Shown in pieces: positions 28,162 to 33,480 of a stretch of DNA of 64,000 bases. Within the stretch, counting starts at the first letter, position 1. The number at the start of each line of letters is the position of its first letter. The notes beneath the pieces were generated by a model. It saw nothing but the letters and a program-made list of their open reading frames with translations. It searched no databases and was not told the origin of the DNA. The DNA comes from Oikopleura dioica (Eukaryota > Animalia > Chordata), in contig OU015566.1 in NCBI GenBank assembly GCA_907165135.1, positions 3,472,001 through 3,536,000 of the forward strand. Reading direction: 5' to 3'. Both the position numbers and the translations under genes were made by a program.

Positions 28162-31100
28162 ATGTTTACGAGAAACTTCGACGACAGTGGAAATTTTTAC
28201 TACCAACGAGCTGGTGGAGCGCCGATGCCTCGAGGAATGCGGTCTACTTTTTCGCGCGAATTCGCCGCTTATTCTGTTATGATGATGCCTGGCAATGAAA
28301 GACCTGATGTGAACGCGGTGAGGCTCTATCAAGAGGACTTTTAATCGAGTTATTTCTAGGGAGGAAAGATCATTATGCCGCCTTCGTCGTTGGAGACGCT
28401 CTCTAGGTTGAATATTTCGTATCCGATGCTCTTCAAACTTGAGGTAAGAATAAAAGCAAGGGGACTGGAGGGGGTTAGACATGAAAATTAAAGAGCACTG
28501 CTCTTACAGCAGGATTAAGTTTTTTACTTGAACTACAAGCCAAGGTGGACTTTCAATTTAATCTGCCAGATTTACTATTGGATTTCCGGGAAAAGTTTCC
28601 ATTAGACCCCCAGGTATCATACCTTTTAGAATCGTCTTGAGCTGCTCTTTTGTTTTATGGAAGCCGATTTTTGAATTTCGGACATTTTATCGGTTTTTGT
28701 CGGTTTTAAGTCAAATTATCGGCATTTTTACGTTTTCACAATCAATATCAATAGAGAATGATAAATATTTGTTGAGAGAGTCATTTCACCGGTATTTGTC
28801 GGTTTTGACGCCGGTTTTAAGCAAAATTATCGGTTTTTCTCAGTAAATGGATCATTTTGGAAAAATTAACAATCTAACCTTGATCGGGCGCTGCGACAAG
28901 CGTTTTTGAAGGGAAGTACGCTTACGCGGCGGCGGAGTTGGACCCATTTTCGGTCCCGAAAAGTAATACTTACATCTAAATTTATAAATTCTTAAATTTG
29001 TTAGGAGCTGTTCATATTTATTTGGCAGGGTTGGATATTTTGAACTGTTAATTTTACAAAATAAAACGATGTCTTCGTTTTACGAAGATTTGAGGTAATT
29101 TTATCAATAAATAGGTAATAACTTGAACATAATATAACTTATTGAAGGTCGTGAAGGATCCAGTGAAGCGAGGAAGGCATATTACAGGTTGGGCAGGGTT
29201 TTTTCTTCTCGTTTCGTCAAAATTCTTGGACAGTGATCGGTAGTCGGCCTTTTTTGAAAAGAAGCTTTCGCTCTTCCCATTGATTGTTCTCGTCTTTGAT
29301 GAGCTTCACCAGATGATAGGATCTCGATCCAGAGATTTTTTCTGATTGTTTATCAAAGTTCGGGTCAACAACGTATTCGGAAACGTATCGTCCAACTAAA
29401 GTGTAGCCGAGACTGTCTTCTTTTTTGTGTTCCAGGGTTCCAAAATGATCTTTTCTTTCATTTTGAAGAAAATTTACGAGCTGTGATGCAGAATCAACAA
29501 CTCCAATGTTCTCCAATCGCTCTCCATCGAATCCACAGCCACCAAGATGATTGTATTGTCGGACAATATCTTGTTTGACGCATCCGTGGGAGGAGTCGAT
29601 CTCCCCTATGAAATTTTTAAAGGCTATTTATATATTTTTCAACCTTTTCCGTGCCCGGACACTGTTTTGAACCATACAATAGAGTCGTAATCGTGGGCAG
29701 GGAGGTTATTCATGAACCGTGGGAGGCAATGGAACATCTCTTTCGACCAGAATTGAGATTCTAGAATTGTGTTAACCGATATCGCTCCATATTCACAAAC
29801 CGGCTCCGTCCGATTGGACCCACAAGCATTTCTTCGGACCGACAGTTGCTCGGGCAGTTTCAAGAGCGCATTTGATCCCAGCAAGGCTGAATTGGACATC
29901 TTTTGCGACGCGTATTTCGCTGAGAAGATGGTTGTACACCTTTTTGGGGTTGTTGTTGTCGTCAACGCCATAGCTGATGACCGAAAGCATCGGATACGCG
30001 TCCCTCTTAAAGTGCATATTGGATGTTTCGACCATCTCGCGACAGGAGACTCCCATGGCTTAAGAAATATCAGAGAAAGTCCTCGTCATCTCTCAAAAAC
30101 ATCAGATATTCTGAAGTCAGAACTGTTCCAGAGGATCTGGAGGCTCTAGAATATCTTGTCGGAAGATTCTGAAGGCTAGTCAGAACTATTCCAGAAGATC
30201 CGGAGGCTCTAAAATGTCTTATCGGAAGATTCTGAAGGCTAGTCAGGACTATTCAAGAGGATCTGGAGGCTCTAGAATTTCTTATAGGAAGATTCTGAAG
30301 GCTAGTCAGGACTATTCCAGAGGATCTGGAGGCTCTAGAATGTCTTATAGGAAGATTCTGAAGGCTAGTCAGAACTATTCCAGAGGAGCTAGAGGCTCTA
30401 GAATGTCTTATCGGAAGATTCTGAAGGCTAGTCAGAACTATTCCAGAGGATTTGATAGTAATTATATTCCTATAAGACATTTGAGAGCCTCCAGATCCTC
30501 TGGAATAGTTCTGACTAGCCTTCAGAATCTTCCTATAAGACATTCTAGAGCCTCCAGCTCCTCTGGAATAGTTCTGACTAGCCTTCAGAATCTTCCTATA
30601 AGATATTCTAGAGCCTCCAGATCCTCTGGAATAGTTCTGACTAGCCTTCAGAATCTTCCTGTAAGACATTTGAGAGCCTCCAGATCCTCTGGAATAGTTC
30701 TGACTAGCCTTCAGAGTCTTCCTATAAGACATTCTAGAGTCTCAAGATTATCTGGAACATCCTTAAGAATCTTCCTGTAAGAATTTCTAGTGCCTACAGA
30801 TCTTCTAGAATAGTTCTGACCATCCTTCAGAATCTCCCTTTATTATTTACCATAGTCAGTGACGAGAAGCAGGGAATCTTTGTCAAAGGTGCAGTTGCCC
30901 AGGTGTTGCTTGCGGAAGTCCTTGGATTCTCTTGAAAGCTCGTAGTGATTGATTGTCTTCCGTTGAGCTCCTGTAGCGACAGCCCCGTTGAAGATAGTCA
31001 CAGACGACGCTGATGAACTCATCACGGGTCGCCAGTTGCATCACCAATTGTTCTCTCTTATATGGATTCTGGTTAGCATCTGTGCGCTCGATTTCAACAA

Positions 31101-33480
31101 GTTGTGCGTAGGTCACTTCTGTTTCAGGATCGATGCCGTGGAAATGATCTTCGAGTCTTGCTTTGACATGCTCGTATCCGGCTTCAGTATCCTGACAATA
31201 CTCGCAAGAATTTTCGATGCACTTCAACCGGTGGCCCGAGTTTACACATATAGACATTTCAGCAAGATCGAAGTCAGTAATGGGCTCTGTAGCCGAGAAT
31301 CTGTTGATCGCAGAAGTATAAAGCTCCATTTGAAGGTGCACTGGGCAATAGCAGTTGAGAATTGCGTTGTCATCGGCGAGGCGAAGCCATTTCGTGAAGT
31401 TTTCCTTATAGATCCGACGATAAGTGCTGATACTGGGAGGATCCGGCACTTCCTCGTTGATTTCTCGCATTTCTAGAGTTTGTTGTTTCTTTTCATCGTC
31501 ATATTTGAGAAGTAAAACCCAAAATGGCTTTTTAAGCAATCGTTTTCTTTTCATTTCTCCAGCTACTATCGCTTCGTTTCTACATCGAGTATCCAAAACC
31601 GAATTTTCTTCGAAAAAGCGGATCAAATCATCGCGAATTTCCTCATTTTTTGTCAGGGATCTGTTCTTTTTTGTTCTTGATAACCCGTCCAGTCTTTCTC
31701 CAACGTTTCGCTTTGGGTGTTTATTGAAATGATGTCCGACTTCAGAGTAGCGCATCTCTTCCAGTTTGATTTCGCGAAGGTCAACTTCATCAAAATATGC
31801 GGGAAGGTGATCTTTGATACCGCAAAATATCGCTATATTAATTTAATGTATAATAAATTTTGGTTCAAAAGTACCTTGCAGTGCACGAGTAACAATACGG
31901 GCGTTTTCGTCAGGTAAGTTGCGTAAATCTTGCTCAAAAACCGCGTTGAATGACTTTTCGGCGTTCTGTATCATCACCGGAAGCAGCTCCTCCACTTCTA
32001 CTCTTTGCTAATTGGAGGTTAATTTATAATAAATATGAATTTGCTTGTCAAAACAATCCAAAAACTGAAAAAACCGAAGAAAAAGAGAAAGATCTCGCTC
32101 AACTTTGAAAAAACCGACGAAATGCCGATAATCCCATCCCTAGAATGTTCACGGATCGCGTTTCCAACATCTTCTTCTTGTTTCACTACAAATTCTCGCT
32201 CTCTCTCTCCATTTTCCATTTTATTTTCTCTCTTTCATCGTCTTTTTCTCTTTTTCGAAGTCGTTTATAAAGCTTCTCCTCTTATTGGCAGGAAAAACTC
32301 ATATTCAGCCTTATCGAATAGTGAGTCATCAAAATATTTTTGATTGAAATTGCTAGCCAAAGAAAGAGAATTGAAATTCTCTTCGAAAAATAAGAGAAAA
32401 CCGACAATTTGAACTTCAAACCGATAAAAAACCGATAAAAAGTCCGAAATTCAACAATCGGCTTCCATAAAACAAAAGAGCAGCTCAAGACGATTCTAAA
32501 AAGGTATGATACTTGGGGGGTCTAATGGAAACTTTTCCCGGAAATCCAATAGTAAATCTGGCAGATTAAATTGAAAGTCCACCCAAGCTTTCAGAACCGA
32601 GGAAAAGAGCGACAAACACACGCTGGAGTTCTTGAATTCATCGCCGAAGAGGGAAAAGTCTATCTCCCTGGTTGGATGATGCGCAATCTTCTTCTGAACG
32701 AAGGCGACAGAATCGGTAAGATCACCACTCAAAGACCCTTCTCATCTTTTTGTAGCGATCACCTACGCTTCTCTTCCTGTAGCGTCGTACTCGAAGTTCA
32801 AGCCTCAATCTTGCGATTTTCTGGAAATTTCAAACCCAAAAGCAGTTCTGGAAAAGCACCTTCGTAGTTTTGCGTGTCTATCAAAAGGAGACATCATTTC
32901 AATAGGTACATGGCCTCATAAAGTAAGTGGAATGTATAAACGCCTTTTAGACTACATCGGACGGGAGTTTGAAGTCCAAATCGTCGAAACAAAGCCTGAA
33001 GATGCGGTTAACATCATCGAGTGCGACATGAACGTCGATTTTGAAGCGCCCGTTGGATACAAAGGTTCGTTTCCTTCCCTCTTCCCTTCAATAAGAGCAT
33101 ATTTCTAGAGCCAGAGCGAGTCCAGCCGCCAGAAGAAACCCCTGGATCGTTTGGAACGCCGGATATTCAAAAGAAACTAGTCGATTATTACGAAAAGCAA
33201 ACGAACTTTCACTCGTTCCAGGGCAAAGGAGGCCGAATCGATGGCAAGAAAAAGGGAACAAAAGGCGTCAAGGTGAGTTCGTTAATGATCTCGGCGGTTT
33301 ATTGATAATTTGCGCTAGAAAACGATCGATTTGGACAAAATCTACAAACGGGGCGTACCAAATTACGATTGGGATGGGCGAACTCTTCACTACATTCATG
33401 CCAAACCAGCGAAAAAGGCGGAAGAAGAAGCTGGCCCGAGTTTTAGCGCGTTTTCTGGGTCCGGACAAGCTCTGAGGTAG
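28162..33480 (+). CDS. UFD1: Ubiquitin fusion degradation protein 1
   Basis: [83 protein letters not shown], and [13 protein letters not shown] ~4.15 kb intron (28445-32594) contains a transposon. Confidence 0.95.
29217..32219 (-). CDS. Intron-containing DDD/E transposase (Sola-like), with one frameshift in a G run near 30985
   Basis: The spliced product reads ...CYCPVH..C....C..C....[24 protein letters not shown]...[15 protein letters not shown]...[21 protein letters not shown]. Removing GT-AG introns of ~38-42 bp at ~31840-31875, ~29765-29800 and ~29610-29645, plus a ~790-bp intron at ~30060-30850, restores these motifs. Confidence 0.82.
30106..30836. repeat. Foldback array of 63-bp tandem units (two inverted arms) inside a transposase intron
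   Basis: The unit GTCAGAACTATTCCAGAGGATCTGGAGGCTCTAGAATGTCTTATAGGAAGATTCTGAAGGCTA is repeated ~5.5x, followed by a short AT spacer at ~30450-30470, then ~6 inverted copies. Confidence 0.92.

Follow-up and report, generated by a model that had tools for sequence, protein, structure and literature searches.

What kind of transposon interrupts the UFD1 gene of Oikopleura dioica at positions 28544-32583 of the stretch analysed here (the window, 64,000 nt of contig OU015566.1; its coordinates count from its first letter), and to which superfamily does its transposase belong? Cut-and-paste superfamilies are defined jointly by transposase and insertion footprint, and the family in question, as read from its copies, pairs a Sola-like enzyme carrying an Asp-Asp-Asp (DDD) triad with a Harbinger-like TNA footprint. 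We consider it reasonably likely that the element is a copy of a low-copy O. dioica family of cut-and-paste DNA transposons whose enzyme is a divergent relative of the Sola transposases, with Sola2 as the closest comparator; it probably represents a branch, so far undescribed, of a kind already known. The odd-length TNA footprint and the GG termini found in its copies separate the family from all three described Sola groups. The original prediction, made from the letters of the window, had proposed a transposon with a spliced Sola-like transposase and an atypical 3-bp duplication; this interpretation is upheld in the main, with the Sola kinship judged by eye.

The element, in the OKI2018_I69 genome of O. 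dioica, is 4040 bp long and bounded by terminal inverted repeats (TIRs), opening with GGTGGAC at 28544 and closing with GTCCACC at 32583. When the left 177 nt (28544-28720, plus strand) were used as a genome query, the right arm (32403-32583, minus strand) was returned at 94% identity over 177 nt, and the two 75-nt end blocks are 96-97% complementary, in agreement with the long, near-identical repeats that had been described. The left TIR contains the family-wide motif TTTCAATTTAAT at 28551-28562. CAA flanks the element on both sides as predicted, at 28541-28543 (preceded by C at 28540) and at 32584-32586 (followed by G at 32587). Both neighbouring host exons (28360-28443 on the upstream side and 32595-32708 on the downstream side of the insertion, plus strand) match Pfam UFD1_N1 (profile positions 22-49, E 4e-10, and 51-87, E 1e-14), which places the element inside a UFD1 intron. 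The right end lies 11 nt from the UFD1 acceptor (CAA plus GCTTTCAG, then the exon), so that the insertion beside this acceptor is as first reported. The intron measured 108 nt before the insertion and is now, at 28444-32594, 4151 nt long; the insertion leaves so little room before the 3' splice site that the occupied intron must take any branch point from the transposon's right end.

We searched the whole OKI2018_I69 genome (64.28 Mb in 19 contigs), a Canu assembly of Nanopore reads polished with Racon and Pilon, with a heterozygosity of 3.6% (PMC8008620). Six transposase loci were found, the window copy included: L030 (C3:2.40 Mb), with 75-81% amino-acid identity to the window copy; L031 (C2:5.25 Mb), L033 (C4:7.87 Mb) and L032 (C2:3.93 Mb), with 44-59%; and, as a third relative of the lineage to which the window copy belongs, a 5'-truncated copy at C3:2630471-2645689 (C3:2.63-2.645 Mb; L071 and L072). 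[quoted passage not shown] The 3-bp duplication is perfect in 15 of these 16 copies, and its sequence is TNA in 15/16, the exception being the CAA of the window copy. Position by position, the preceding base is C in 16/16, the first duplicated base T in 15/16, the third A in 16/16 and the following base G in 15/16; since TNA is framed in this way by C and G, the target reads as an odd-length palindrome, C-TNA-G. A 4-bp or TTAA footprint occurs in none of the 16. The 3-bp duplication proposed from the window copy thus holds over this sample, as does its misfit to the 4-bp rule of Sola.

The ends of the family follow a common plan. At 20 of 20 ends examined, GG is followed by 5 variable bases and then by the block TT(T/C)(C/A)AATTTAAT, and family TIRs are 155-340 bp long. 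In L033 and L032 the two ends of one element differ from each other at positions 3-7 (GGCGCGG vs GGTGGAG, and GGTCCGG vs GGCAGGG), with GG and the 12-nt block fixed; the extreme tip therefore seems free to vary.

The transposase gene lies on the minus strand and, as read from its sequence, is divided by four GT-AG introns of 42, 792, 40 and 38 nt, so that the apparent frameshifts in it are mostly introns, as had been proposed. Exon A (31875-32007, ending in TRALQ) is uncertain in its 5' limit and in any upstream first exon, with a possible ATG at 32219; it is followed by the 42-nt intron (31833-31874). Exon B/C (30851-31832) runs from a Cys/His-rich N-terminal region to the first putative catalytic Asp, in LLLVTDY, and includes a frameshift at 30979-30987. 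Directly after this Asp comes the 792-nt intron (30059-30850, phase 1), followed by exon D (29801-30058, AMGVSCRE...WVQSDGA), which holds the second putative catalytic Asp, the 40-nt intron (29761-29800), exon E (29644-29760, ESQFW...SGHGKG) and the 38-nt intron (29606-29643). Exon F (29220-29605) holds the third putative catalytic Asp and ends at a premature stop (29217-29219), beyond which a remnant of a C-terminal Cys/His tail (29139-29216, ..CPRIL..CPTC..SSLHWI..) continues out of frame, with a gap at ~29199-29205, to the ancestral stop at 29139-29141. Removal of the introns restores TDY-AMGVS, SDGA-ESQF and GHGKG-EID. The public annotation, which consists of AUGUSTUS models with RNA-seq hints and has a median intron of 49 nt (PMC8008620), contains protein CAG5103760.1 (Oidioi.mRNA.OKI2018_I69.chr1.g923.t1, here P0002), the spliced model of the window copy itself. 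This model splices SDGA-ESQF and GHGKG-EID, the last two of the four introns, and the model of the C4:7.87 Mb paralogue (P0003) splices TDY-AMGVS.

The introns differ in their distribution among relatives. The intron that follows the first Asp has its position in common with P0003 and with the gene for CBY14293.1 of Norwegian O. dioica (P0008), where position and phase are identical (G-CN, within an Ala codon) and the intron is 42 nt long. Because both are kept in a lineage with only ~28% identity, this intron is, by that comparison, old, and a recent acquisition of introns is rejected. The 40-nt intron at SDGA-ESQF is found in the window copy and L030 and is absent from the L031 and L033 lineage, where coding is continuous (L031:4290-4300 and L033:4828-4838); the P0008 gene has an intron 5 nt off this site. 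On present alignments its history is one of loss, gain or sliding within the transposon family. The GHGKG-EID intron is absent from the P0008 gene.

The single gene, interrupted by four or more spliceosomal introns, encodes a transposase of ~650-700 residues, whose core is predicted to be RNase H-like and whose triad is Asp-Asp-Asp. The window and L030 copies differ at a proportion of 0.13-0.14 of nonsynonymous sites (pN) and 0.72-0.74 of synonymous sites (pS); the transposase has evolved under strong purifying selection, and its silent sites are saturated. Its relatives have in common a Cys cluster and the motifs hhhhD(Y/F)AM, ETQxxHF, SDGAxxFW and sGHGKGxID, and the third acidic residue is Asp in each aligned member that reaches this position. 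We infer that the three invariant Asp residues form the catalytic triad.

These motifs invite comparison with Sola, whose members are described as combining a DDD triad with duplications of 4 bp and as having TIRs that measure 11-1124 bp (PMC10741241). Two bona fide Sola2 transposases, Sola2_DFa-2 and Sola2_PPa-1, are printed in Additional file 3 of Bao & Jurka 2013 (PMC3627910), and we compared their motif blocks with those of the window protein by eye. Sola2_DFa-2 contains VIVLMDFKENIALG..EELSQNFY....ILGMVIY, FFWSDGAKHFKS and WQFSAQYHGKSDVDRHF (PMC3627910), and the window protein contains LLLVTDYAMGVS..ETSNMHF....MLSVISY followed by WVQSDGAESQFWS. Within these blocks, MDFKEN...ELSQNFY, WSDGAKHFKS and YHGKSDVD of Sola2_DFa-2 correspond to TDYAMG...ETSNMHF, QSDGAESQFWS and GHGKGEID of the window protein, and the spacing is D(87)D(43)D in the former and D(85)D(45)D in the latter. 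The two groups are thus alike in the motifs hhhhD(F/Y)..., (S/C)D(G/N)A..F and HGK(S/G)xxD, in a cysteine motif of the CxxC type that lies upstream of the core, in cut-and-paste architecture with TIRs and a single transposase, and in combining a DDD triad with the lack of a Pfam domain. They differ in the first motif, which is DFKEN in Sola2 and D(Y/F)AMG in the present family; in their TIRs, which are 12-22 bp in dictyostelid Sola2 and 155-340 bp with GG ends here; and in their target duplication, which is 4 bp and AT-rich (AWWT) in Sola2 (PMC3627910) and 3-bp TNA or 5-bp CTNAG in the present family. Word and profile searches from family queries reached no named Sola protein.

In the sequence searches the family has almost no relatives. 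The window gene was searched exon by exon, and P0002, P0003 and P0008 were used where a continuous protein was needed. Pfam returned no match at E<=1 for each exon or for the full-length relatives P0008, P0003, P0009, P0011 and P0013, and a word-index protein search with exon B/C of L030, the family alignment and the P0008 core found only self matches. A profile of exons D and E retrieved 21 proteins from 1.84 billion representatives; of the top matches, those that were looked up are either O. dioica proteins or fragments without a name from marine metagenomes, TARA Oceans included. Relatives were absent from 185,579 prokaryotic genomes and from IMG/VR, and a scan of JGI metagenomes yielded one 1.5-kb contig. 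Against the PDB sequences, the family profile matched DNA polymerase beta only, at chance level (E 0.4-1). The new lineage that had been put forward as a possibility accords with this picture of a family with no Pfam match and almost no relatives.

The fold was approached through an AlphaFold2 model of P0003, built on an 18-row alignment (mean predicted local distance difference test score, pLDDT, 61; core 60-92). The model has the topology b1-b2-b3-a1-b4-a2-b5-a3, which is the RNase H-like order; D146 closes b1, D231 closes b4 and D277 opens the helix after b5. Foldseek (E at best 2e-3) and VIA-align (Z 8.5-5.9) returned RNase H-like folds only. Among solved structures the nearest are PIWI, RNase H, retroviral integrases, terminase nucleases and Mos1/Metnase, none of which is a close relative. 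The transposase core is thus predicted to be RNase H-like, and motif comparison and model together are consistent with a DDD triad placed in such a core, as in Sola.

Several observations weigh against a Sola relative as the source of the enzyme. The link to Sola is a comparison of motifs and spacing by eye with Sola2_DFa-2 and Sola2_PPa-1; the resemblance stands, in a form weaker than originally claimed. The 4-bp duplication that defines Sola is not seen in the 16 complete copies. The confidence of the P0003 model is middling (pLDDT 61), and its fold matches are generic, with Z scores within the chance-level range. An ESM Atlas query with a single exon gave a blank result, and a query with P0008 gave as nearest neighbours eukaryotic clusters carrying Pfam DUF7869 (feature score 0.93), a domain that the family genes do not match: DUF7869 (PF25273) was rejected by hmmscan of P0008 and its relatives at E<=1, and a six-frame search of the genome for this domain gave no match at element loci. 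Finally, a 5-bp CTNAG duplication with GTGG ends fits the same sequences equally well, since G is the first base of the element and C its last. Given the missing 4-bp duplication and a kinship judged by eye, we file the family, on the sequences at hand, as Sola-like and not as a member of Sola2.

The alternative that survives best is a wholly separate, undescribed DDD superfamily whose resemblance to Sola2 would reflect generic features of RNase H-like transposases. We regard this as unlikely, although the failure of the Pfam, PDB-sequence and word searches to reach anything named, the 21 matches among so many representatives, the lack of relatives in prokaryotic genomes and IMG/VR, and a footprint unlike that of Sola all speak for it. 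Three motif blocks nevertheless align with Sola2 at near-identical spacing, SDGA and HGK(S/G)xxD included, and according to Bao et al. in 2009 the three Sola groups are themselves said to be extremely divergent from one another.

A Zator element would account for the 3-bp duplication, and its rarity is a further likeness. Bao et al. in 2009 reportedly described Zator as an Asp-Asp-Glu (DDE) group akin to Tc1/mariner-like bacterial enzymes. No Pfam domain has been reported for Zator (PMC5751038), as none is found here. Zator is nevertheless presented as DDE with Tc1/mariner-like bacterial relatives (PMC4455052), whereas the present enzyme has a DDD triad with Sola2-like motifs; by this comparison of descriptions, a Zator assignment is improbable.

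We hold it slightly more improbable still that the element is of the PIF/Harbinger type with a transposase diverged beyond recognition. This superfamily is characterized by TNA/TWA duplications, a DDE enzyme and a second, Myb-like open reading frame (PMC10741241, PMC12477816), and the likeness in footprint is close: the 3-bp TNA duplication in a palindromic C-TNA-G target and the GG-starting ends form a classic Harbinger pattern (PMC12477816, PMC10741241), and MITEs are found in both. The enzyme, in contrast, does not fit, and we reject membership on that ground. DDE_Tnp_4 and Plant_tran are unmatched at E<=1 in the exons and in P0008, P0003, P0009, P0011 and P0013, so that the transposases are unrelated by Pfam, and the third residue is the Asp of HGKGxID and not the Glu of the PIF motif. 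Neither the lists of open reading frames nor a six-frame reading of 28544-32583 contains a second conserved frame, Myb/SANT-like or other, and the TIRs of 155-340 bp compare with 14-50 bp in PIF/Harbinger.

Two further superfamilies were compared. piggyBac resembles the family in its DDD triad and its strict, short palindromic target, but differs in its 4-bp TTAA target, in its Pfam domain DDE_Tnp_1_7 (unmatched here) and in a quite different spacing of the Asp residues. CACTA/CMC does not fit: the termini are GG... and not CACTA, and no Pfam match lies above cut-off, the DUF4216 match of metagenome fragment P0016 being sub-threshold (20.6 bits against a cut-off of 30.6 bits). Least credible of all is an ordinary Sola member whose 4-bp duplication (CTNA or TNAG) was misread, for although the nearly invariant flanking C and G make 4-bp strings repeat on both sides, this parse is ruled out by the loss of TIR register (one base out at 16/16 copies), the target is an odd-length palindrome, and known Sola2 targets are AT-rich AWWT (PMC3627910).

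For the divergent Sola relative that we favour, the following course of transposition may be proposed. The transposase would bind the TTTCAATTTAAT block, its predicted site, at positions 8-19 of each long TIR and would cut at the invariant GG ends; the element would then join to the palindromic C-TNA-G target with a 3-nt stagger, which would leave TNA duplicated. Short derivatives of ~340-620 bp would be mobilised in trans.

The MITEs fall into three subfamilies. The first comprises 5 copies of 344-350 bp that are 97-99% mutually alike and 91.5% alike to the window TIR, and the second comprises 4-5 copies that are 92-99% mutually alike. Further non-autonomous derivatives are a single copy related to L031 and another of 621 bp. 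The young subfamily, 97-99% alike, argues for activity of the family in the recent past. The recent activity that had been suggested for the element is accordingly seen in its MITE derivatives and not in the window copy, which has no near-identical sibling in the genome and is broken as assembled, so that its own recent activity is not shown. Among the coding loci, L030 and L031 have every exon piece open, L033 carries a frameshift, and L032 is without exons D and E. The copy at C3:2.63-2.645 Mb lacks the element's 5' half, and within the region of exon F it is divided by an insertion of ~12 kb, which contains a stretch that resembles retrotransposon pol (residues 833-1206 of P0005, 22% identity). 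P0005 itself (1560 aa) is a Ty3/gypsy-type pol polyprotein fused to 75 residues of transposase exon D, a part that matches the C3:2.63 Mb copy at 94%; it is probably a chimeric gene model spanning the nested insertion.

The window copy had been described as near-intact, with a single break near 30985. In coding terms this is not so. The frameshift at 30979-30987, in or beside a G run, is confirmed: 2 nt are missing there in comparison with L030, L031 and L033, all of which are open at this place. It is not the sole break. Measured against L030, a 1-nt gap in an A run at ~29250-29256 and the 2-nt gap at ~29199-29205 also shift the frame, giving the premature stop at 29217-29219 and the loss of the conserved C-terminal Cys/His motif. 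The coding sequence is thus defective as assembled. Since all three indels lie in or beside homopolymer runs of a Nanopore assembly, they are possible assembly errors.

Two arrays of a 63-bp unit, inverted with respect to each other, take up nearly all of the 792-nt intron that follows the first Asp; 30115-30451 (5.3 copies) forms one arm of a palindrome, and 30467-30839 (6.1 copies, in inverse orientation) forms the other. At the RNA level the fold is a hairpin of ~340 bp, with an energy of -553 kcal/mol and z -53. What sets this satellite apart is its restriction to one family and one intron: the 63-bp unit is found in the same intron in each lineage of the genome (L030, L031, L032, L033 and C3:2630471-2631213) and nowhere else. 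It is also far better conserved than the exons. The arrays of L031, L033 and L032 are 82-89% identical to that of the window over 337 nt, with consensus units higher (up to ~98%), whereas their exons are 58-75% identical to those of the window, with silent sites saturated, and their TIRs 66-72%. In L030, the closest lineage, the unit has diverged to a 32/64-bp form; in L031 most of the units run in one orientation; and in the P0008 lineage the intron is present but holds no array. Two processes would each explain the conservation of the satellite: selection on its sequence, and concerted evolution among the dispersed arrays. Rfam gave no match in the satellite region, and the similarity of the 63-bp unit to the TIR was not above that of shuffles.

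Palindromes and arrays are also seen in more distant relatives. In a TARA Oceans relative (L035:2966-3274), the open reading frame ends at a GTGAGT donor after EIDSS, and a palindrome with 139-nt arms (83% complementary) adjoins; this looks like an intronic hairpin too, in a different intron. In the Norwegian O. dioica sequence FN653271.1 (L034:3058-5068), 52-bp units repeat in tandem over ~2 kb, at a distance of ~1 kb upstream of the CBY14293.1 gene.

If the kinship with Sola is true, target choice and stagger can shift within superfamilies, or converge between them, and a group is added to the rare and poorly sampled Sola superfamily. In the genome paper (PMC8008620), 44% of the repeats of O. 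dioica from Okinawa stayed unclassified, and a part of these now has a class. The family is small, with its 6 coding loci and about a dozen MITEs, and is experimentally tractable because at least 2 copies have fully open exons. The hairpin satellite, ~90% conserved between lineages whose synonymous sites are saturated, is a candidate for transposon self-regulation. It is a doubtful further proposal that the family is a fourth undescribed Sola group (or a sister superfamily) with an odd-length C-TNA-G target, in which a selectively maintained hairpin satellite, in the old intron after the first Asp, serves as a built-in regulator; if this were true, the satellite might, for example, give rise to small RNAs or form a protein-binding array, keeping copy number low.

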